DNA of 64,000 nucleotides from Fonticula alba ATCC 38817 (Eukaryota; Protista; Nucleariida), in assembly GCA_000388065.2 (NCBI GenBank), contig KB932205.1, one strand, 5' to 3'. The position numbers and the translations under genes are program-made. This document shows positions 33,049 through 49,103 of this stretch, in pieces. Position 1 is the stretch's first letter; each line of letters begins with the position of its first letter. The notes below the pieces were generated by a model. It did no database searches and was not told the origin of the DNA. It saw nothing but the letters and a program-made list of their open reading frames with translations.

Positions 33049-33121
33049 GGGGGCGTAGCTCAAATGGTAGAGCGGCCGCTTAGCATGCGGCAGGCAGGGG
33101 GATCGATACCCTCCGCCTCCA
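33049..33121 (+). tRNA. tRNA-Ala (anticodon AGC)
   Basis: 73-nt cloverleaf: acceptor GGGGGCG/CGCCTCC with the G3:U70 Ala identity pair, D-arm GCTC/GAGC, anticodon stem GCCGC/GCGGC with loop TTAGCAT, T-arm GGGGG-ATCGATA-CCCTC, discriminator A, downstream T5 Pol III terminator. Confidence 0.97.
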
Positions 33122-35632: not shown

Positions 35633-36107
35633 GACAGGCAACGGGGCCAGGCGCGGCCGGGACCAGGCCCAGAGGAGGGGCCAAAGTGAGCAGGTGCGAA
35701 AGAACACGAGGGGCGGATGCGGGGGGGGGGGGGGGGGGNNNNNNNNNNGGGGGGGGGGAGAAAGGAGGAGCGAGGGACACGGGCGACGAAGCGACGGAAA
35801 GCGAGAGGTTGCTGCTGCCAGGCCCAGCCTGTCTGGAGGGAGATCCCAAAAAAAAGTCGCCCACACCCCCTCCCCGCCTCACCGGCCCCGATCCGGCCGC
35901 AGGTCGCAAATGGCCGAGCCCAGGAAAGGGACGACAACCACGGCGGATCTGGAACTGACATGCCGCCCGTGGGCTTGGCCGCTGCGGTATGCCCCCCCCC
36001 TCCCCATGGAAGAGCTTCCCCAGATGGCGTGGACAGCCTCCATGAGTGGGGGTGATGGGGAAAATGCGGCCAGATGTCCTCCAGTGCGTGTGAGGGGTGT
36101 GCGTGCA

Positions 36108-36138
<31 letters not shown>

Positions 36139-36550
36139 GAGGAAGCGAAAAAGGGGCACCCCCAAGCGGCGATCGCACTTGGTTGAGGGGTAGATGCAAG
36201 ATGACGTGATCATGTGACGCCGGCGCACCCGCGCCAGAAGGCGGCCAAACACACCGGCCCCGGTGTTGTGCGCACGAACGCGCGCGCGCGCGCGTGAGAA
36301 CGTGCGTAACCACGACGCCCTGGGCGCTTGCGGTCAAAGGCCTGTGTGGCCCTCTCTCTCTGGGGCCGCCCCGCCCCGTGCGCCAGGCCCCCCCTCCTCC
36401 CCCTCTTCCGGCAACGCGCGCTGTGCGCCGCCCCCGCGCGCCCCCACCAGCCGAGACAATTCCCCCCTGGCCCCTTCCGCACGCTACCAGAGAGAATATG
36501 AGAGAGAGAGAGTGCTGTATGACAAGAGGAGGGAGAGGGAAGTTTGAAAC

Positions 36551-36556
36551 TTTATT
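36551..36556 (-). terminator. AATAAA polyadenylation signal of the snoRNA host transcript
   Basis: About 110 nt into the last exon, followed on the minus strand by a U/C-rich stretch. Confidence 0.55.
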
Positions 36557-36783
36557 GTTTGATTTGCTCGCCGCCCGGCCGGCCCCCACAGCAGGCACCG
36601 ACGACGCAGCAGTGTGCGCACACACGCCGTCGATATGTCGCGACAAGGCCACCATGCTCCGCTCTACAAGGAGGAGGGGGGTGAGAGAAGAAGGCGATGA
36701 GTGCGTGTGTTAGAGAGCAATGGGAGGGGGTGTGTGTGCAGGAGAGAGAGAGAGGGGGGGTGTTTTACTCAACAAGAAAAGTG

Positions 36784-36852
36784 ATCATCAGGCGGCCCTT
36801 TTGGGGACGGCTGTAGGTATTAGCATGAAAATTTTTGGCAATCATCGTAATC
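36784..36852 (-). ncRNA. snR53: Box C/D snoRNA snR53-like (SSU Am796, yeast numbering)
   Basis: C box CGATGAT (36847-36841), guide TTTCATGCTAATA (36830-36818) antisense to SSU TATTAGCATGGAA, D box CTGA (36791-36788), terminal stem GATTA/TGATC. The D' box is degenerate (CCTA). Confidence 0.65.
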
Positions 36853-37465
36853 GACACGCGTATTGCGCGCGCGCGCGCCGGGGAGAGGAGGGGGAAGCGG
36901 TGTGACCGCAGGGAGGGGGATATACGTACGTATTTGGTGGGAAGGGGGACATGCCCGAGAGATGTGGAGAACACACACGGGCTGCCGAGTGCACGGGATG
37001 CGCGCGATGTGTACCACCGCAGACACAGCGCGAGAAGTGCGCGGCCAGGAGTGGGGGGCTGTGTGTGGGGGGGAGATAGGAAGAGAGAAGGAAACACGGA
37101 TGTAAGAATGTGTATGGAAAGAGGATGGTTTCTATTTGGGGGATATATATGTGGGAGAAGCGCCAAAGACACACACACGCAGGAAGGTCCGGGAGGGAGC
37201 AGGCAGAAGTGCCCCCTCTCTCAGATGCCTCCCCACAGGGAAAGTGTGTGCAAAGGTGCAACAGAGGAAGAGAGAGAGAGGCTTGGGCGCACATGAACCA
37301 TGCACAGACACCGCGCTCCCCCGTGAGAGGGTGGGGAAGGGGGCCGAGCGACCCGGCGCATTCTCAACAAGGAGGGATGTTTGGCTAAGAGGGGGAGAGA
37401 GAAAGAGGGTGTCAGAGGAAGGATGTGGCGCGGGGTGGAGGGCGGGCGTGGAATAAAAAGGAAGA

Positions 37466-37532
37466 GAACTCAGGCATCAGAATGTGGACATCATGCTTCA
37501 GACGAAAGATGGTTTTGATGAACATCAGAGTG
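37466..37532 (-). ncRNA. SNORD51: Box C/D snoRNA U51/U32/snR39-like (LSU Am807, yeast numbering)
   Basis: C box CTGATGT (37528-37522), guide ACCATCTTTCG (37513-37503) + T-CTGA, antisense to LSU CGAAAGATGGT. C' ATGATGT, D box CTGA (37473-37470), terminal stem ACTC/GAGT. Confidence 0.8.
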
Positions 37533-37745
37533 GATGTGGGGAGGAGAGAGGATAGAGGGAGAGACGGGCATGGACCCAGGGGGGTTGTGTATGTACCTTG
37601 TCGTGCGTGTGACCGACACATGGGGAGGGTCGGAACACGGAGAAAGGGAGGGCGCACACATCCACAGGAGGTGTGTCTACAGAGGAGGGAGGAGAGTGTG
37701 AGAAGAGAGTGGCGGAGGAGGAGGGAAGATGCGCAGAGGGCAATC

Positions 37746-37823
37746 TAACTCTGAATTGAACAGTCGTCACTGAACATCTGACGGCCTTTCCTATCATTAT
37801 TTGTTGCGGTTCTCATCATAGCA
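37746..37823 (-). ncRNA. SNORD49: Box C/D snoRNA U49-like (LSU Cm in CGG[C]TCTTCC)
   Basis: C box ATGATGA (37819-37813). ATAGGAAAGGCCGT-CAGA closely matches recalled human U49 ATAGGAAGTGCCGT-CAGA and is antisense to LSU CGGCTCTTCCTATCATT. C' GTGACGA. The terminal D box appears as CAGA (37753-37750). Confidence 0.75.
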
Positions 37824-37941
37824 CTATAGGGGGGAGGAGAGGGGAAGGAGGAGAGGGGAGACGTCTGTGGGAGGGGGGAGAGAGGGAGGAGTTAGGAATG
37901 GGGAGGGAGGAGGGGGATGAGGCGGGAGAGAAAACGCGTGT

Positions 37942-38020
37942 TTTCTCAGTGCGTATCGCGAAATACAAAACCGTTCGAATCATCAGATTCATACAGCCAA
38001 GGGTGAATTTCATCAAGGAA
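37942..38020 (-). ncRNA. SNORD53: Box C/D snoRNA U53-like (LSU Cm in ACAG[C]CAAGGG)
   Basis: C box TTGATGA (38016-38010), guide CCCTTGGCTGT (38003-37993) + D' ATGA, internal C' CTGATGA, D box CTGA (37949-37946). The +5 rule selects the C equivalent to human 28S C3848 (older numbering). Confidence 0.75.
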
Positions 38021-38225
38021 GGACACGGGAGGCGGAGAGAGGGCGGGCAGCCGCGGACGTACACTGTGTGTGTGGGGAGGGACACCACAGAACAAGGGCC
38101 ATGGAGGAGAGAGGCACATGCATCTCCACCCCTCGGGTGGATGAGCGACAGGGCCACTGAGAAGAGGAAGAGAATGTTAGAAGAGAGGCGGAAGGGAGGA
38201 GAGGGAGGAAGATGGGCTGATGGAG

Positions 38226-38319
38226 GGGATCAGACATCTAAGGAAGGTCCATATATTCCGTCATCTACCTAAGGTATAAGGTGGAAACTGCGAACATGGC
38301 TGGTTTTTCATCACGAATA
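38226..38319 (-). ncRNA. U14: U14 box C/D snoRNA
   Basis: C box GTGATGA (38314-38308), domain A TTCGCAGTTTCCAC, domain B CCTTCCTTAGATGT directly before D box CTGA (38233-38230). Both hallmark 18S-complementary elements of U14/snR128 are present. Confidence 0.95.
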
Positions 38320-38574
38320 GGGGGGAGGAGGGGAGGAGGAGGGGGGCGGGGCGGGTATGCGTACACTCTTCGCCAAGTAGGATGGCTGGCCCTGGGGGAG
38401 GGCGGCGGCGGCTCGAGGTGGGGGCCAAGAGCCAGGGAAAGTGACCGGCAACAGCTTCGGAGGTAGGGGCGTGCGCGCGTGCTCTCACATGCAGAAGGGC
38501 GGCCTACGATGGGAGGAGGGGAGGCGATGTCAGAAAGGGAGTGGCGAGGAGCGGGGGAGATGGGAGGGGGAAGG

Positions 38575-38660
38575 GCGTTCAGGTAAACCCGTTTGGCTGT
38601 GGGCACTGCATTTATCAGCAGAGTCTCGTATGACTGGGGCGGCAGGGTCTCATCAGGACA
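38575..38660 (-). ncRNA. SNORD31: Box C/D snoRNA U31/snR67-like (LSU P-loop Gm, E. coli G2251 equivalent)
   Basis: C box CTGATGA (38656-38650), D box CTGA (38582-38579). A 14-nt guide TGCCGCCCCAGTCA (38644-38631) is complementary to the conserved LSU segment TGACTGGGGCGGCA. Confidence 0.8.
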
Positions 38661-38917
38661 AGGGAGGGGGGAGGGGGAAGGAGGCGTACTCTGACTGTGT
38701 GAGGAGGGGGGAAGCTCGCGTCGCAGGCGCAGACATACTCCAAGATGCCCGGTCCCCAGAGGGAAGGGGGCTCTCTCTCATGGATCTCCAACACTATGGG
38801 ACTGCTTGGGGAGGGGGCTATCGAGAGGAGAGGGGGAAGGGGGGGGGCGAGAGGAGTTAGAAGGAGGGAGACATGTGGAGGGGAGGAGGGAGGAGAGGAG
38901 GGGGGGGGGATGACAGA

Positions 38918-39032
38918 CGCCGAGTGATCAGCTAAAGCTGGCTTGCGCCGTAGGGGGATACCCAACGACGGGCAAAATTTCTTCAACACGGTCGTTTTGA
39001 CGGGATAAGAAGACAAGGCATCATTTCGGCGC
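38918..39032 (-). ncRNA. snR190: Box C/D snoRNA, snR190/SNORD12-like
   Basis: C box ATGATGC (39024-39018), D box CTGA (38931-38928), terminal stem CGCCGA/TCGGCG. Guide GTCTTCTTATCCCGT + D' CAAA is antisense to LSU rRNA GCGGGGAAAGAAGAC. The following ACGACC-GTGTTGA resembles the recalled snR190 TTCGACC-ATGACGA. Confidence 0.75.
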
Positions 39033-39469
39033 GCGTCTGCGGAGGGGCAATGGCAGGAGAATGGAGGGGGGGGGGAGAACGCGCGGGGGGGGAAGCGGGT
39101 AACGAACCAGACACAGTGGGGGGGAAAGGGGGCACAGAGAGAGCGCGAGTGAAGGAGTGGGCGGCGTGGGATCCTCCGACAGCACGAGACACGCAAGCAC
39201 AAGAGCCGGCCACCAAGAAGGAGCACATCCACACAGTGCCAAGGTCTCCTTCCGGTGGTAAGCGGGCACACGCGCAGCAGCAGCAGCGAGCATGCACACA
39301 AACACACAGGCAAAGGCACAGAGAGAGGAGAGGCAAGACACGGGGGGGGGTGGGAGCACAAGGTGGGGCACAGCGCACGCGATGCAAGGCTGAAAGAGGG
39401 CCGCCTCACTCCACACAGAGTGAGGCTGTGACCCTCTTCGCTTCGTCTTCAGTGGCCGCCCGGCGGCCC

Positions 39470-39477
39470 CTTATATA
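39470..39477 (-). promoter_or_regulatory. TATA box of the snoRNA host transcript
   Basis: TATATAAG on the minus strand in otherwise GC-rich DNA, about 90 nt upstream of the first splice donor. Confidence 0.6.
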
Positions 39478-42477
39478 GTAGGCCATTTTCCCCCTCGACG
39501 CTCCCCCGCCCCCCTCCGTCCCGCCCCCCCCAGGGCGCGGGGGGGCCTGTGGCAAGACGTCCCCGGGGCGGGGCTGGCCGGGCAACGATTCGAGCAGCAC
39601 CGGAGAGGAAGGCCACCAGAGCCAGGCTGGGGCGGGGCGCGAAGGGGGGGGGGGGGGCCGACCATGCAGCCGCCCCGTGCCCGGCCTCCAGGGGACTCAC
39701 TCCCCCATGCCGGGACACACGGCGCCCATGCGACACGGTCGCCGAGGACCAGGCCGCCGGGCACGACTGGCGCCGGAGCCACCACCAAGAGCTGGCGGGC
39801 CCCAGGAGTCGCCCCCCCCCCCCCGCCCTGGTCGGCAAATGACCCGACCGCCGGGGTAGGGCAGCGGAGTGCGCTGATCCGCGAGTGCTCGCCCCTTCCC
39901 GTCCCAAGGCCCGCACCCAAGCGGGGCACGGCAGACGGAGCAAGCCGGCTGGCGAACCGGGAGGGGCGCGTCACACACGCACCCCCCCGGCTGCCCTCCT
40001 CCCCGGCCCCCGGGCGGAGACAAAAACCGAACCCACGTTGGGCGCCAAAAAAGAGCGGCGCCGAGCGACAAGCCCGCCTCTTCCCTCGTGGCATAAAAGG
40101 GGGAGGGGGAAAGCCCGGTGGACCGGGGATGCCTCTCGCGCTGGGCGTGCGTCCTCCCCCGTTCTCGCTGGTCCCCGCCCCCCCCCCCATGGCCACTCGG
40201 AACAGCGGGCCCCTTTGTCGAAGGCAAGGAGCACAGCGCCAAACCCCGCAGCACGACCGGTCCGCACGAAGGTGCTGGAAAGAGACGGCCGCCTGGTGCC
40301 TTCGCCCGGTGTCTGGTCTCCCTTTTCTCCGCCGCCTACGGCCCCCCCTCGGTCCTAATGTGCACTCTCCGAGGAGGCAGGAAACAAGGGACCGCCCGGC
40401 CCCGGCCTCCAGCGGGCGACCGCGCGGACAGCCGGGTGGGAGGATTTCTATATAATGCCATTGTGGTTCCATGATGGACTAAGTGGCATTGTTGAGGGTG
40501 CACATGATTCCGTCGGGGACTTGGAATCTCAATTCAAAGGGGGCGTGTTTTAAGAGCGTTCGGGACGGAGATGATCACATTGGCCTCTCCTGCCGGCGCC
40601 CGTTCTGAATCAACCTCACTCGTTGCCGGCCAGTCTAGAGCTTTATTGCTGAATAAAAAGCACCCTTTTTTGTTGCAAACGACCAACAGGCCGTGTGCCC
40701 AACGAGATTGTTGCCGCCATGTTTCGGCCCACCTCCTCTCTCGCTCGGATCGGACCGTCGCCGGCCGAGCGAACGGTCTCCTATTGGGTTGGTGTATTCT
40801 CTTCGGCACAGACCGCCCCACGAAAGCAGGGCGCCCGGGTCTGTGGGATGCCCCACCCCGGGCGGGGGGGGGGGGGGGACTTGACAGTGCCCGAGGGCTG
40901 CCGCGGCCTGCCTCCCTGGGCGTCGGCGAGTCGGCCCGAATGCCGGCGGACGGGGTGGAAAAACTCAGGATGGCCTCCCCACTGCGGGGGGCGCCCCCGC
41001 GCGCCGCGAGAGTCGCGCCAGCACCAGACCTGGAAATGCGAGGGGGAGGGGAGGCTGAACGTCGCGCGAGCCCCTGTTGGATGTACCCCCAGGCTCTTTT
41101 TTGCAGTACCGAAGACCAGGCACGCGCGGGAGCGGCGAGGGGCGAAGGTACCGTCCAGTGTCCTCTCCCCCCGCCCCCCGTGGGCACATGAAGCCCTGCG
41201 CCGCCGGGCTGGTGGCCATGCGCCAGGGGGCTGCTTGTGTGTGCCTATGCCCGGGGGCGGTGCAGTGCAGTGTGCGTCCGGGTCCCTGGTCCCTTTTGCC
41301 AGGGGCCTGGGCAAGCAGTCCCCCCGCCCCCCCCCCCGGGAGTCCGTGCCTAACTGGGGGGGGGGGGAGAGACGTGTTGCCCGGGGGCGGGGGCTGGTGG
41401 CAGGCAGGCGGGTGTGGACGGATGGCCGGCAAGGGGGGGGGACGCCCGCTTCCGCCGATCCGCCCCCCCCCCTCCCTGCATATCTCCTCGGACACCGCCC
41501 TCCCTCCCTGAGTGGTGGGAGGTCGGCGGATGGCGTGCACAAACGGGCGGGGATTTTTCAGCCGGACTATTGCCCGGCGCACTCCGGAAAGGGTTCGTCC
41601 TCGCCAGCCCGACCCGTTTTCCATTTGTTATCCCTAACTTTTGAGGTAAAGGTCGTAAGGTCCGTATTTATCCCTTCCCCCTTTCCCCCTCCTCCTTTCC
41701 TCCCTCTCCTCCCCCCCCCCTCTCGTGTGCGTGTACACGTCCACATCCGCGGATGGTCCTGCCGTCGTCGGGCGTAGATGCTGTGTGGCCGGCCGGCCCG
41801 CCCCTCTCCCCCCTCCCTCCCCGTGAGCGCGTATCCACACCCGCCTGCGTGTGCGGTTGGGCCGATCTGCGCGCGTTTCTCGCCCCCCCCTCCTCCGTCG
41901 CCCTCGGGGGCTGTCGTGTCTCCCCTTCTCCTCTCTCCCTCGCTCGCCCCGTGGCTGTCACTTCGACGTGAGGAGATGGGGGGACACCTGGATGCGCCGC
42001 GCCCATACTCGCTCGCTCTCGTGCGCGCGGGCATGTGTGTCTGCATGGGGGGGGAGGCCTGGATTGTCTCGCCTCCGACTGCGCGGCAGCAGGAGGGCCC
42101 CCCGCCCCGCGCCCGGCACATGGCCAAGTGCCCTCCCTGCCTTGTGCCTGGTCGCGCAAGGGCGGGGGGGGAGAACCGTGTGCTGTGTCCACCCACGACG
42201 ATCCGCCTCCATCGTGTGGACGGCATCGGATGTACCACCACGGATGCTGCATCCGATGTTCCCCCCCTGATGAGCGAGCGTCGTGTCGCCTGTGGGAGGG
42301 CCATGCTCTCTCTCCCTCCCTCCCTCATCCTTTCCTCCTCTGGAGCCCAAGCGTAACCTCCCCCCCTCGTGCCGAGACTGACTCTCCCTCTCCCCCTCGC
42401 TGCGCGCCCGCCCCCTTCACCGCCGCCCCCCTCCCGCCCGTTCGTTTATCCCCCTCTCCTCCTCTCGCACAGCAAAA

Positions 42478-45003: not shown

Positions 45004-46252
45004 ATGTTCCTCTCCCGGTCCCTGGTCCGGGCTGGCGCGTCCCTCCGCAACACCACCTCCCTCGTATGTGTTCCCTGCGTGGCCCTTTTGCCGTTCCCCT
45101 GGTCCTCTGTCTCGCCCCCCTCCCTCGCCGGCTAACACTGCTCGCGCTCGCGCTCGCGCTGGCCGCTCTTCGCAGATTTCCGTGCGTGCGTTCACCCAGA
45201 GCGTTCCCCGGCGCAACGAGGACAGCCCCTTCTCGTCGGCCGGCGTCCCGCAGGAGACCGCTGCCCGTAGCCCGGTCGTTGACACCGGTGTTTTCAATGA
45301 GGTGAACCTCCAGATCGAGGACTTCCCCGGCATTGCCCAGGGGGCCTTCGACCCGTCTATCACCGCCAAGCTCCTGGCCCCCCTGGACCCCGATGAGATT
45401 GAGATCAAGCCCGGTACGTGCACGAACGCGCGCGCGCGCGCACACACACACACACACATGCATGGTTTGCAAATGTGCATATACACGCCGCCTGCCTGGT
45501 GTCTCTCTCCCTCTCTCTCTCTCTGACAAGAGCCCCCTCCCGACAGACGGCCTGATCTATCTGCCTGAGATCAAGTACCGCCGCATCCTGAACGCCTCCC
45601 TCGGCCCCGGCGGCTGGGGTATGGTCCCCCGCAGCCCGCACACCTTCCAGGACCGGATCCTCTCGCGCGAGTATGCCCTCTTCGCCATGGGTCGCTTCGT
45701 GGGCCAGGCACGCGGCGAGCAGGTGTGTTGCCTCGTCCTCCTCTCTCTCTCCCCCCCCCCCCGTCCGACTTGCCCTTGCTCACTCTCGTTCTCCCGTCGC
45801 GCCTCTTCCCATGGCAGATTGTCTTCGACCGCCATGGCTTCCCCACCGCCTCCGAGGGTGTCAAGTCCAACGCCCTGGTGCGCTGCTGCAAGGATCTCGG
45901 CATTGCCAGCGAGCTCTGGGACCCGCGCTTCATCCTCGAGTGGAAGCAGAAGTATGCCGTCGAGCGCTGGTGCGTGTTTCCTCGTCTCTGCCCGCCTCCT
46001 CCCCGCGCATCCCCTCGCCGGCATTCCGCCACCTACTCACGCTTCTCCGCGCCCCCGCCGGACTGCCGGCAACACAGGGTCACCGACACCCGCACCAACA
46101 AGAAGTCCAAGGCCTGGCGCCGCAACGACCGCGTCTTCGACGCCCCTCTCGTCGAGTCGACCTTCTCCTCCAGCGCGGCTGGCGGTGCCAAGCCCGGGGT
46201 CCCCGGTGCTGGCGGTGCGCCCCCCGGCGCCGGTGCCCCCCAGACTCGCACC
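45004..46252 (+). CDS. MGM101: Mitochondrial genome maintenance protein Mgm101 (Rad52-like); 3' end in a gap
   Basis: Exons 45004-45063, 45176-45413, 45547-45722, 45818-45969, 46078->46252. Motifs [62 protein letters not shown]. Mitochondrial presequence. Confidence 0.96.
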
Positions 46253-47901
46253 NNNNNNNNNNNNNNNNNNNNNNNNNNNNNNNNNNNNNNNNNNNNNNNN
46301 NNNNNNNNNNNNNNNNNNNNNNNNNNNNNNNNNNNNNNNNNNNNNNNNNNNNNNNNNNNNNNNNNNNNNNNNNNNNNNNNNNNNNNNNNNNNNNNNNNNN
46401 NNNNNNNNNNNNNNNNNNNNNNNNNNNNNNNNNNNNNNNNNNNNNNNNNNNNNNNNNNNNNNNNNNNNNNNNNNNNNNNNNNNNNNNNNNNNNNNNNNNN
46501 NNNNNNNNNNNNNNNNNNNNNNNNNNNNNNNNNNNNNNNNNNNNNNNNNNNNNNNNNNNNNNNNNNNNNNNNNNNNNNNNNNNNNNNNNNNNNNNNNNNN
46601 NNNNNNNNNNNNNNNNNNNNNNNNNNNNNNNNNNNNNNNNNNNNNNNNNNNNNNNNNNNNNNNNNNNNNNNNNNNNNNNNNNNNNNNNNNNNNNNNNNNN
46701 NNNNNNNNNNNNNNNNNNNNNNNNNNNNNNNNNNNNNNNNNNNTCCTGCTCACCCGGCGCTGCGTCTTCCGTGCTGGGGGGGGGACGCGGGTAGTATGCT
46801 GGCCTGTGTGCATGCGGGGCCCGGCTCGCCCCCCTCCACTCCGCCTGAATATGGTTCGGCGGGACAATGAAGGGGGGTGCCGGGCAGCCCGCCGGTGCCT
46901 CTGCCCTCTCTGGCTCGTGGCCGGGGCGGAAGGCCTTGTCGGTGCGATGGTAGTTGACTAAAGATCCGTCGGCACTTGTCCGTGGCCAGGCGGGTCGTCC
47001 AGTATTCTGCCGACCGCCGGCCCTTTAATATTCGACCCGGTATATTTGCTCCAAAGGGACACCTCCTCGGCGGCTGGCGGGGCGACTTTCGGGGGCTGGT
47101 CCCTTTGTGTGCCTGACGTATGTGTTTCCCGAGGCAGACCGGGGGCGGGGCGGGGCCGTCGTGGGCGGAGATAGGCAGGGAGTCGCAGCCCCCCCCCCCC
47201 GCCCCTGTCCGGGGAGGGTGCTGGCGCGCGCGCGCATATTTGCACCGCCAGGTGGCCAGCATTCTTCCGAGAATTGTCACCCTGTCCGCTGGGGCTCCAT
47301 GCATATGCGCGCGCGGCCCTTGTGCATGCGTCTGTGGGCCGGTCTGTTTACACACATTCGGCGTCCGATCTTGATGTGCGCTCGGCCTCCCCCCNNNNNN
47401 NNNNNNNNNNNNNNNNNNNNNNNNNNNNNNNNNNNNNNNNNNNNNNNNNNNNNNNNNNNNNNNNNNNNNNNNNNNNNNNNNNNNNNNNNNNNNNNNNNNN
47501 NNNNNNNNNNNNNNNNNNNNNNNNNNNNNNNNNNNNNNNNNNNNNNNNNNNNNNNNNNNNNNNNNNNNNNNNNNNNNNNNNNNNNNNNNNNNNNNNNNNN
47601 NNNNNNNNNNNNNNNNNNNNNNNNNNNNNNNNNNNNNNNNNNNNNNNNNNNNNNNNNNNNNNNNNNNNNNNNNNNNNNNNNNNNNNNNNNNNNNNNNNNN
47701 NNNNNNNNNNNNNNNNNNNNNNNNNNNNNNNNNNNNNNNNNNNNNNNNNNNNNNNNNNNNNNNNNNNNNNNNNNNNNNNNNNNNNNNNNNNNNNNNNNNN
47801 NNNNNNNNNNNNNNNNNNNNNNNNNNNNNNNNNNNNNNNNNNNNNNNNNNNNNNNNNNNNNNNNNNNNNNNNNNNNNNNCCCCCCCCGCGCGCGCGCGCA
47901 G

Positions 47902-49103
47902 CATCCTCACCGAGGAGTTCCTCTACCTTCAGACCACATTCCAGGACCAGCAGGCCTCCGCCGGTGTGCTGCGCATCAACCGCGATGACGGCGCCATCTC
48001 CCTCGAGCGTATGTCCATCCTTCCTGGATTCTGCCCCTCCCCTCCCCGCCCTACAGCTCCGGCTGCTGCCCTGCTCTCTGACCCCCCTTTGCTCTTACCT
48101 CCTCGAAAGGCGAGATGCCCAGCGGCTCCCCGAAGCTGATCGATGCCTTCCTCGGCCTGATCAACCTCCACAGCGGTGCGTGCCCTCCTGTCTGCATGTG
48201 TCTTGCTCCGGTTGCTCGCTGGCATGCCGGATGCCCTAACCCTGTCTCCCCCCTCCCAGGCCTGCACATGGTCACCGTCGAGGCCTCCCGCCGTGTTGGC
48301 CGCATCGGCGAGTCCGATGCCGTTTACATGCTGCAGGATGTTTCCATCACGCGCATCTCCCGCAGCCCCGAGGACAACCTCACCCCTGTGCAGGTACGCA
48401 GCCTCCCCCTGCACCGTTTCTCGGATGACCCACCTGCCTTCCAGACATCTCACCCCCCCCCCCCCGCCTTCCCCCTTCCCCTGTCCGTCATGCGCAGCTC
48501 TCCACCGATCGTGACCATTGCGACATGATCGCCCGGCTGCTGGTCAAGGGCGGCTTCTACTTCAGCCCTACCTACGATCTGAGCCGGTCGCTGCAGGCCC
48601 AGCGTGACCTGCAGCAGGCCAACCCCGCGTACCAGGACAAGCTCCTGAGCCGGCGCTTCGACACTGCCTTCAACTGGGCCTCCTTCCTGCAGTTCCCCCT
48701 GATGAAGCAGATCATGGCCGACTCGACTGGCAGCCTGGCCGGCGCCGCTGCCTTCCTGATGCCCATCATGTGTGGCTTCGTCTCCATCAGCCCCGTCACC
48801 ATGTCCAACGGCCGGTCCTTCGATTACATCCTGCTCACCCGGCGCTGCGTCTTCCGTGCTGGCACCCGCTACAACACTCGCGGTGTGGATAGCACCGGGC
48901 GCGTGGCCAACTACAACGAAACCGAGGTCCAGGTCCGCCTGGCCGGTGCCTCCGGCCCGGGTGACATTATGTCCTACCGTCAGACCCGCGGTTCGATGCC
49001 CTTCTACTGGCGCCAGATCACCAACCTGCGCTACACCCCGGCGTTGGAGTTTGACAACCTCGCTCTTTGTGTGCGTCCGCGCCTTTTGCCGTTCTCTCTC
49101 CCT

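Follow-up and report, generated by a model that had tools for sequence, protein, structure and literature searches.

A probable host gene for seven intronic box C/D snoRNAs in Fonticula alba, with homologues of two separate yeast snoRNA pairs

The stretch of Fonticula alba DNA analysed here (contig KB932205.1, 64,000 nucleotides, hereafter the window) contains seven units resembling box C/D small nucleolar RNAs (snoRNAs), all of them on the minus strand between positions 36784 and 39032 (Table 1). A first-pass annotation of the window had listed seven snoRNAs here, and their ends and order match the positions of the C and D boxes that we found. The order it gave is correct when the minus strand is read from 39032 down to 36784; the strand itself is a correction that we add. 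Our box search of the minus strand returned both a C box and a D box in every unit, with C-box variants of RUGAUGA in snoRNAs 1 (AUGAUGC), 6 (CUGAUGU) and 7 (CGAUGAU) and a D-box variant, CAGA for CUGA, in snoRNA 5. The plus strand of the snoRNA stretch is strongly purine-rich and every feature of interest reads from the minus strand, on which pyrimidines make up 57-85% of the sequence from ~39400 to 36500, against 37-39% on both flanks. This block is limited by the sequence TATATAAG (39477) on one side and by the only minus-strand AATAAA within 36400-39600 (36556) on the other. The snoRNAs of Fonticula are undescribed in the literature that we searched, where the genome was used only in passing in one intron survey.

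Table 1. Features of the Fonticula alba snoRNA locus in order of transcription, each read from the higher to the lower coordinate; splice sites, branch motifs, promoter-like and polyadenylation motifs are candidates assigned by motif.
Feature	Position	Strand	Motifs and remarks
TATA box	39470-39477	minus	TATATAAG; only copy on either strand of the window; putative function
First intron, 5' splice site	39102-39107	minus	GTTCGT; uncertain; 74 nt upstream of snoRNA 1
snoRNA 1, snR190 / SNORD12 (HBII-99) type	38918-39032	minus	115 nt; C AUGAUGC; D CUGA 38931-38928; SNORD12 match, guide register
Intron 1, 3' end	38818-38860	minus	branch-like CTAAC 38860-38856, pyrimidine tract, AG 38819-38818
Intron 2, 5' splice site	38733-38738	minus	GTATGT
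snoRNA 2, U31 / snR67 type	38577-38660	minus	C CUGAUGA at 38655; D CUGA 38582-38579
Intron 2, 3' end	38504-38533	minus	CTGAC, AG
Intron 3, 5' splice site	38359-38364	minus	GTACGC
snoRNA 3, U14	38228-38319	minus	SNORD14 match, domains A and B
Intron 3, 3' end	38157-38180	minus	CTAAC, AG
Intron 4, 5' splice site	38057-38062	minus	GTACGT
snoRNA 4, SNORD53 / plant SnoR37 type	37944-38020	minus	C UUGAUGA at 38015; D CUGA 37949-37946
Intron 4, 3' end	37865-37895	minus	CTAAC, AG
snoRNA 5, U49 type	37748-37823	minus	C AUGAUGA at 37818; variant D CAGA 37753-37750
3' end after snoRNA 5	37677-37702	minus	CTCAC (variant branch motif), AG
snoRNA 6 intron, 5' splice site	37591-37596	minus	GTACAT
snoRNA 6, U51 / U32 / snR39-snR59 type	37466-37536	minus	guide pairing
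snoRNA 6 intron, 3' end	37385-37415	minus	CTGAC, AG
Second TATA-like motif	37143-37149	minus	TATATAT; internal promoter, or alternatively a segment of an 'empty intron'
Last intron, 5' splice site	36924-36929	minus	GTACGT
snoRNA 7, snR53 / plant SnoR53Y type	36784-36852	minus	C CGAUGAU at 36846; D CUGA 36791-36788
Last intron, 3' end	36664-36713	minus	CTAAC, AG
Polyadenylation signal	36551-36556	minus	AATAAA; putative function

The antisense pairing of the units was tested on 119 eukaryotic ribosomal DNA (rDNA) loci, which were taken from metagenomes by a conserved 5' pattern of the 28S gene. The nucleotide opposite the fifth position upstream of the D or D' box was read as the modified one (the +5 rule) and compared with the lists of 2'-O-methylated sites of yeast and Arabidopsis; yeast numbering is used where yeast has the site. 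All seven units pair with a conserved ribosomal RNA (rRNA) site, in up to 70 independent loci, and each register picks out a nucleotide with known methylation in yeast, Arabidopsis or both. The registers at A796 and C414 were verified in one yeast-like 18S rRNA (1799 nt) and that at A807 in yeast-like 25S rRNA. Guide pairing at conserved sites in the correct register thus fits all seven family labels of the first-pass annotation, and both the existence of the seven snoRNAs and their family assignments are confirmed.

Two of these labels were decisive for the comparison with yeast, and the first of them, the assignment of snoRNA 1 to the snR190 type, holds by its SNORD12 match and by its guide register at the G2395 position of 25S rRNA. 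The guide GUCUUCUUAUCCCGU, which is followed by a degenerate D' box (CAAA) and is common to the fungal snR107 family, pairs with 28S GCGGGGAAAGAAGAC in a duplex with two G-U pairs and one internal mismatch, and the register falls on the third G of the target as it does in the SNORD12 consensus. In the five loci that hold both sites (5/5), this G is located 30 nt downstream of the target C of snoRNA 4. The RiboMeth-seq map of Arabidopsis (PMC8053127) shows the same spacing between C2366 (SnoR37) and G2396 (SnoR28), which argues for the identity of both sites. In the predicted fold of snoRNA 1 (z -2.45) the C and D boxes are enclosed by a terminal stem of 7 bp, and GUCUUC of the guide forms an internal stem with GAAGA beside a C'-like UGUUGA. 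Yeast snR190 is a chaperone and not a methylation guide, with divergent C'/D' motifs and an internal stem over part of its box A (Jaafar et al., PMC8536666); degenerate C'/D' motifs and an internal stem over the guide are thus predicted for the Fonticula RNA as well. Box B of snR190, a 15-nt pairing to 25S domain I in yeast, was not identified in snoRNA 1 with the 119 rDNA loci, the one candidate being a 10-nt match at 28S ~nt 299, which is at chance level. Near this nucleotide 299, two parts of snoRNA 1 (38932-38985, minus strand) pair with adjoining 28S domain I sequence, AAAUUUCUUC-UAAAGCU: GAAGAAAUUU over 10 nt, and AGCUUUAG, directly upstream of the D box, over 8 nt. Singly each of these pairings is at chance level; jointly they resemble a guide plus an extra pairing.

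The second decisive label, snR53-like for snoRNA 7, concerns A796 of 18S rRNA, which is the site of yeast snR53 (fungal snoRNA survey and yeast site list). The guide UUUCAUGCUAAUA forms 13 bp, including one G-U pair, with 18S UAUUAGCAUGGAA. In the yeast-like 18S rRNA AUUAGCAUGG starts at 793, and A796 (the A of AUUAGC) pairs with a U of snoRNA 7 five nucleotides upstream of the degenerate D' box CCUA, which bears the label out. The D' guide of this snoRNA (36811-36830, minus strand, CAUGCUAAU) is also complementary to AUUAGCAUG, which we take to be a stretch of U6 small nuclear RNA; no U6 gene is found in the window. The Neurospora snR53 homologue is predicted to target both 18S rRNA and U6. 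The D-box guide of snoRNA 7 (36792-36806, minus strand, CCCCAAAAGGGCC) forms 12 bp, one of them G-U, with the 18S hairpin GGGCUCUUUUGGG in 15 rDNA loci. We know of no methylation site in this hairpin, and it could be a lineage-specific second target.

The remaining five units carry guides of recognizable types. For snoRNA 2 the guide GCCGCCCCAGU is common, in the same register, to SNORD31, snoU31b, GlsR4 and TtnuCD11; the guide CGCCCCAGU stands in the SNORD31 register before a degenerate D' box (CAUA) and pairs with 28S CUGGGGCGGCA, the site of G2619 in yeast 25S rRNA, G2620, and G4166 in human. The second guide of yeast snR67, for U2724, was not found in snoRNA 2, and a survey of fungal snoRNA families confines this guide to Saccharomycotina. 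Both U14 domains of snoRNA 3 align to the Rfam SNORD14 consensus: domain A, UUCGCAGUUUCCACC, pairs with 18S AAACUGCGAA near nt 85 in 26 loci, and domain B, CCUUCCUUAGAUGU, directly adjoins the D box on its upstream side. Its duplex with the C414 site is perfect in 2 loci and has a single mismatch in 25. Domain B predicts the sequence ACAUCUAAGG for the 18S rRNA of Fonticula itself. The guide of snoRNA 4, CCCUUGGCUGU followed by AUGA, has the register of the SNORD53 consensus (CUUGGCUGU-CUGA) and pairs with 28S ACAGCCAAGGG in 8 loci, the target C corresponding to Arabidopsis C2366. A perfect 8-bp hairpin, GAGAAAAC-acgc-GUUUUCUC (37928-37947, minus strand), begins inside the D box of snoRNA 4 and has no equivalent in the other six snoRNAs of the cluster. 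In Arabidopsis, C2880 is guided by U49 and A816 by U51, U2922 is the A-loop nucleotide and A801 is the SnoR53Y site (PMC8053127). The guide of snoRNA 5, AUGAUAGGAAAGGCCGU followed by CAGA, pairs with 28S GUCGGCUCUUCCUAUCAU, and its register selects the C of GUCGGCUCUUCC. This C precedes the A-loop U by 42 nt, which equals the spacing of C2880 and U2922 in Arabidopsis and fits the U49 type. The guide of snoRNA 6, AACCAUCUUUCGU, is followed by a canonical D' box (CUGA), is common to ceN109, Me28S-Am982 and TtnuCD1, and finds its complement, 28S CGAAAGAUGGU, in 70 loci. By the +5 rule its target is the middle A, corresponding to A807 in two loci whose 25S rRNA begins like that of yeast and to A816 in Arabidopsis. 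In one of the metagenomic rDNA loci (L028) the match to conserved 28S sequence breaks off immediately behind CACCCACTAG, beside the A loop and ~60 nt after GTCGGCTCTTCC; this has the appearance of an insertion, for example a group I intron. For the second, D-box guides of snoRNAs 1, 2, 4 and 5 no conserved rRNA target was found in the 119 rDNA loci, and those of snoRNAs 6 and 7 gave weak or variable-region matches only.

Rfam did not supply the confirmation that the first-pass annotation had looked to it for. At gathering thresholds, a search of the whole window returned no snoRNA, a tRNA being the sole match, and thus none of the seven units (0/7) reached the gathering score of a family. A scan by E-value gave SNORD12 for snoRNA 1 (35.5 bits, E 9e-5, gathering score 43), SNORD14 for snoRNA 3 (33.3 bits, E 4e-4, gathering score 64) and SNORD49 for snoRNA 5 (28.3 bits, E 1e-3, gathering score 37). 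Also below threshold were SNORD31 for snoRNA 2 (14.3 bits), with three further U31-type families from protists and plants that align by the common guide, the 3' half of SNORD53_SNORD92 for snoRNA 4 (12.8 bits, via CUUGGCUGU plus the box) and ceN109 (21 bits), Me28S-Am982 (16.5 bits) and TtnuCD1 for snoRNA 6, where the alignments run through ACCAUCUUUCG plus CUGA. These sub-threshold alignments are family-specific and share the guide elements, which supports the assignments. For snoRNA 7 a scan of 161 nt gave no Rfam match up to E = 10, including the models RF00338 and RF01279 for the snR53 / SnoR53Y type, and therefore it is the guide that identifies this snoRNA. As a whole, the probable identities of the seven are supported by the elements that define their function and not by curated thresholds.

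The sequence between the snoRNAs is organised with a regularity of its own. Donors of the GTAYGY type precede five snoRNAs (units 2, 3, 4, 6 and 7), and a branch motif, a pyrimidine tract and AG succeed one another downstream of every unit. The branch motif has the form CTRAC in six cases; behind unit 5 it is CTCAC. The distance of the branch A from the D box is 71, 49, 53, 54, 51, 58 and 78 nt for units 1 to 7, and that of the AG is 73-124 nt. CTRAC occurs 48 times on the minus strand of the window, a probability of 0.011 per 15-nt window, and against this background the regularity of the branch motifs is not explained by chance. Such spacing fits the splicing-dependent assembly of intronic box C/D small nucleolar ribonucleoproteins (snoRNPs) in vertebrates. 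The Neurospora work, too, attached meaning to how far a snoRNA lies from the 3' splice site. The ten open reading frames over or beside the locus gave no credible Pfam domain, one weak hit remaining below threshold.

Because the splice-like signals, the branch spacing and the pyrimidine block fit together, we infer a spliced, non-coding host gene with one snoRNA per intron, and we consider it probable that the minus strand from ~39477 to ~36540 (~2.9 kb) is such a gene, transcribed as one unit by RNA polymerase II, and that the linkages it has in common with yeast were inherited. In such a gene each intron would carry one box C/D snoRNA, with snoRNAs 4 and 5 possibly in one complex intron; splicing would be followed by lariat debranching and by trimming back to the C/D core protected in the snoRNP, and the pyrimidine-rich spliced exons would themselves be without function. 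Once released, the snoRNPs would be expected to guide 2'-O-methylation of 25S rRNA at G2619, at A807 and at the sites of U49 and SNORD53, and of 18S rRNA at C414 and A796. Domain A of U14 would additionally serve 18S processing, and snoRNA 1 would pair with the root of 25S domain V like snR190/SNORD12.

One would argue that the units could as well be released from an unspliced polycistronic precursor by endonuclease cuts in the spacers and exonuclease trimming, the splice motifs being relics. The snoRNA clusters of S. cerevisiae and of plants are indeed processed without splicing, and snoRNA 5 has no clear donor. However, donor, branch and acceptor motifs recur at regular spacing and far above background, which makes this explanation very improbable.

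Several further points weigh against a single spliced host gene with securely typed snoRNAs. The failure of all seven units to reach an Rfam gathering score and the lack of a match between snoRNA 7 and any family model have been given above, and the pairing was established on the rDNA of other eukaryotes. The D' box is degenerate in five of the six cases in which it was assigned (CAAA, CAUA, AUGA, CAGA and CCUA in snoRNAs 1, 2, 4, 5 and 7), and therefore some of the guides may be weak or inactive. The donor of the first intron is uncertain, with GTGAGG at ~39408 as an alternative, and no convincing 5' splice site for snoRNA 5 was found between 37864 and 37824. Since no usable donor follows the acceptor at 37865 before unit 5 begins, snoRNAs 4 and 5 may share a complex intron, as is known from fungal clusters after exon loss (PMC3596301). 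Finally, the 455 nt that separate the acceptor at 37385 from the next donor (36929) far exceed the ~79-139 nt of the other putative internal exons, and the window has no more than three TATA[AT]A[AT] sites on its minus strand, among them TATATAT at 37149.

The last two points would also suit two adjacent units, in which snoRNAs 1-6 are transcribed from the promoter at 39477 and snoRNA 7 from a small host gene of its own behind the TATA-like motif; the yeast pairs would then be neighbours and not parts of one transcript. The authors of the Neurospora study placed putative promoters before each snoRNA of the snR190-U14 cluster, yet the snR190 and U14 homologues are co-transcribed there despite these internal promoters. 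In Fonticula the pyrimidine-rich composition runs unbroken through the 455-nt gap and there is no minus-strand AATAAA between 37385 and 37150. Thus we regard two units as unlikely, and a single host gene remains our preferred reading. Within it, an 'empty intron' between units 6 and 7, for example from GTTCAT at ~37298 to AG at ~37058, is possible, an exon or a gene boundary being no less compatible with the 455-nt stretch. We also considered, and rejected, a structured RNA (H/ACA or other) in 37300-37050, as the fold is no better than that of shuffled sequences (z -1.7) and there is no Rfam match.

The gene type and the mechanism proposed for Fonticula are ordinary and known from fungi and animals; it is the content that is new. 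Fungal snoRNA clusters outside Saccharomyces are non-coding and carry one snoRNA per intron, and the polycistrons of yeast are regarded as descendants of such intronic clusters that lost their splice signals (PMC3596301). The host genes of Neurospora crassa (clusters I-V), Candida, Yarrowia and Schizosaccharomyces, and UHG and GAS5 of vertebrates, have several short introns with one C/D snoRNA each, as in the Fonticula model. The fungal genes share with it canonical donor, branch and acceptor signals and the fixed distance of the snoRNA upstream of the branch point. The fungal exons are short, weakly conserved and non-coding, and the predicted exons of Fonticula would be short and non-coding as well. 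The Fonticula gene differs in that its combination of seven snoRNAs is unreported for fungi in the literature examined, in that its carrier is a non-fungal holomycotan, and in that its splicing is predicted.

The first-pass annotation had given snR190-U14 and snR67-snR53 as separate units in S. cerevisiae. This is borne out by the published list of yeast polycistrons, in which snR190-snR128(U14) and snR67-snR53 are two of five polycistronic snoRNA units (bioRxiv 10.1101/352906). In Fonticula a single strand holds the four homologues of both pairs in no more than 2.25 kb, and the yeast order is kept within each pair. U14 is preceded on its own strand by the snR190/SNORD12 type in the S. cerevisiae dicistron, in N. 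crassa cluster V (CD16-CD37) and in Fonticula, and the snR190-type RNA is 122 nt long in Neurospora (CD16) and 115 nt in Fonticula. In contrast to the yeast dicistron, which is processed without splicing, the U31 type intervenes in Fonticula and four more snoRNAs follow. The target homologues of snR67 (25S G2619) and snR53 (18S A796) likewise share one strand with the snR67 type upstream, but in Fonticula four other snoRNAs and ~1.7 kb separate the two. The SNORD53, U49 and U51 types are three further members of the cluster.

Whether such linkages are inherited was approached by a permutation in which five snoRNAs were drawn at random from 43-47 yeast C/D snoRNAs. Pairs from two different yeast clusters appeared in 0.5-0.7% of the draws (p 0.005-0.007), and two or more yeast-linked pairs of any kind in 2.4-3.2% (p 0.024-0.032); the test is post hoc and assumes random assortment, and its result is suggestive and not decisive. 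It could be that the homologues of snR190, U14, snR67 and snR53 came together by chance or by a fusion specific to Fonticula, and the locus would then be uninformative about the fungal ancestor. Several observations favour this: snoRNA-bearing introns move between loci in fungi (PMC3596301), the snR72-78 cluster is argued to have formed from dispersed genes only at the root of Ascomycota (fungal snoRNA survey), and U31 between snR190 and U14 is not the yeast arrangement. Additionally, the two pairs are on different chromosomes in Neurospora, where CD16 (snR190) and CD37 (U14) form an intronic, co-transcribed cluster on chromosome II and CD11 (snR53) and CD26 (of the snR67 family in the fungal snoRNA survey) are on chromosome I. 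Against this stand the low frequency of two-cluster pairs among five random yeast snoRNAs and the preserved order within each pair. It is unlikely that both yeast pairs met in one cluster by chance, and we hold a chance or lineage-specific assembly as a whole to be somewhat improbable. Inheritance of the linkages from the common ancestor of Fonticula and fungi is more likely than chance assembly. Since the two separate pairs of yeast stand together in the Fonticula gene, the linkages seem to be older than fungi.

A further hint in the direction of inheritance comes from plants, in which clusters with U14 may also contain U49. The Arabidopsis cluster U31-SnoR4-U33-U51-SnoR5 (HID2) joins guides for G2620 (U31) and A816 (U51), both of which are present in the Fonticula gene (PMC8053127); the plant cluster differs by an H/ACA snoRNA, by its other members and by the polycistronic processing without splicing that is usual for plants. 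One may picture an ancestral multi-intron gene, in the ancestor of Fonticula and fungi or older, with at least snR190, U31/snR67, U14, U51 and snR53, which was later split in fungi and of which the Arabidopsis U31-U51 linkage would be a remnant. We regard this larger scenario as doubtful, and the U31-U51 linkage common to Arabidopsis and Fonticula may be a coincidence.

In the surroundings of the host gene, the tRNA gene (33049-33121, plus strand, 57 bits) lies ~3.4 kb downstream of its end on the opposite strand, and a run of ~30 uninterrupted G (36105-36138, plus strand) just beyond its 3' end. The G+C content falls to 0.36 at 46001-48000, compared with 0.6-0.74 elsewhere, with lesser dips at 54-56 kb and 58-60 kb.

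Our analysis adds seven snoRNAs and a set of predicted rRNA methylation sites for Fonticula alba. The arrangement supports the view that the unspliced polycistrons of yeast descend from host genes with one snoRNA per intron, and it raises the question whether two yeast dicistrons were once one gene. As snoRNA genes are thought to move freely, a linkage kept for about a billion years would be unusual, and an ancestral gene of the extent pictured above, if true, would be among the oldest conserved non-coding gene arrangements in eukaryotes. The Fonticula locus belongs to the closest outgroup of fungi and makes these ideas testable; a linkage conserved for so long would also provide a marker for the evolution of intronic and polycistronic snoRNA organisation.

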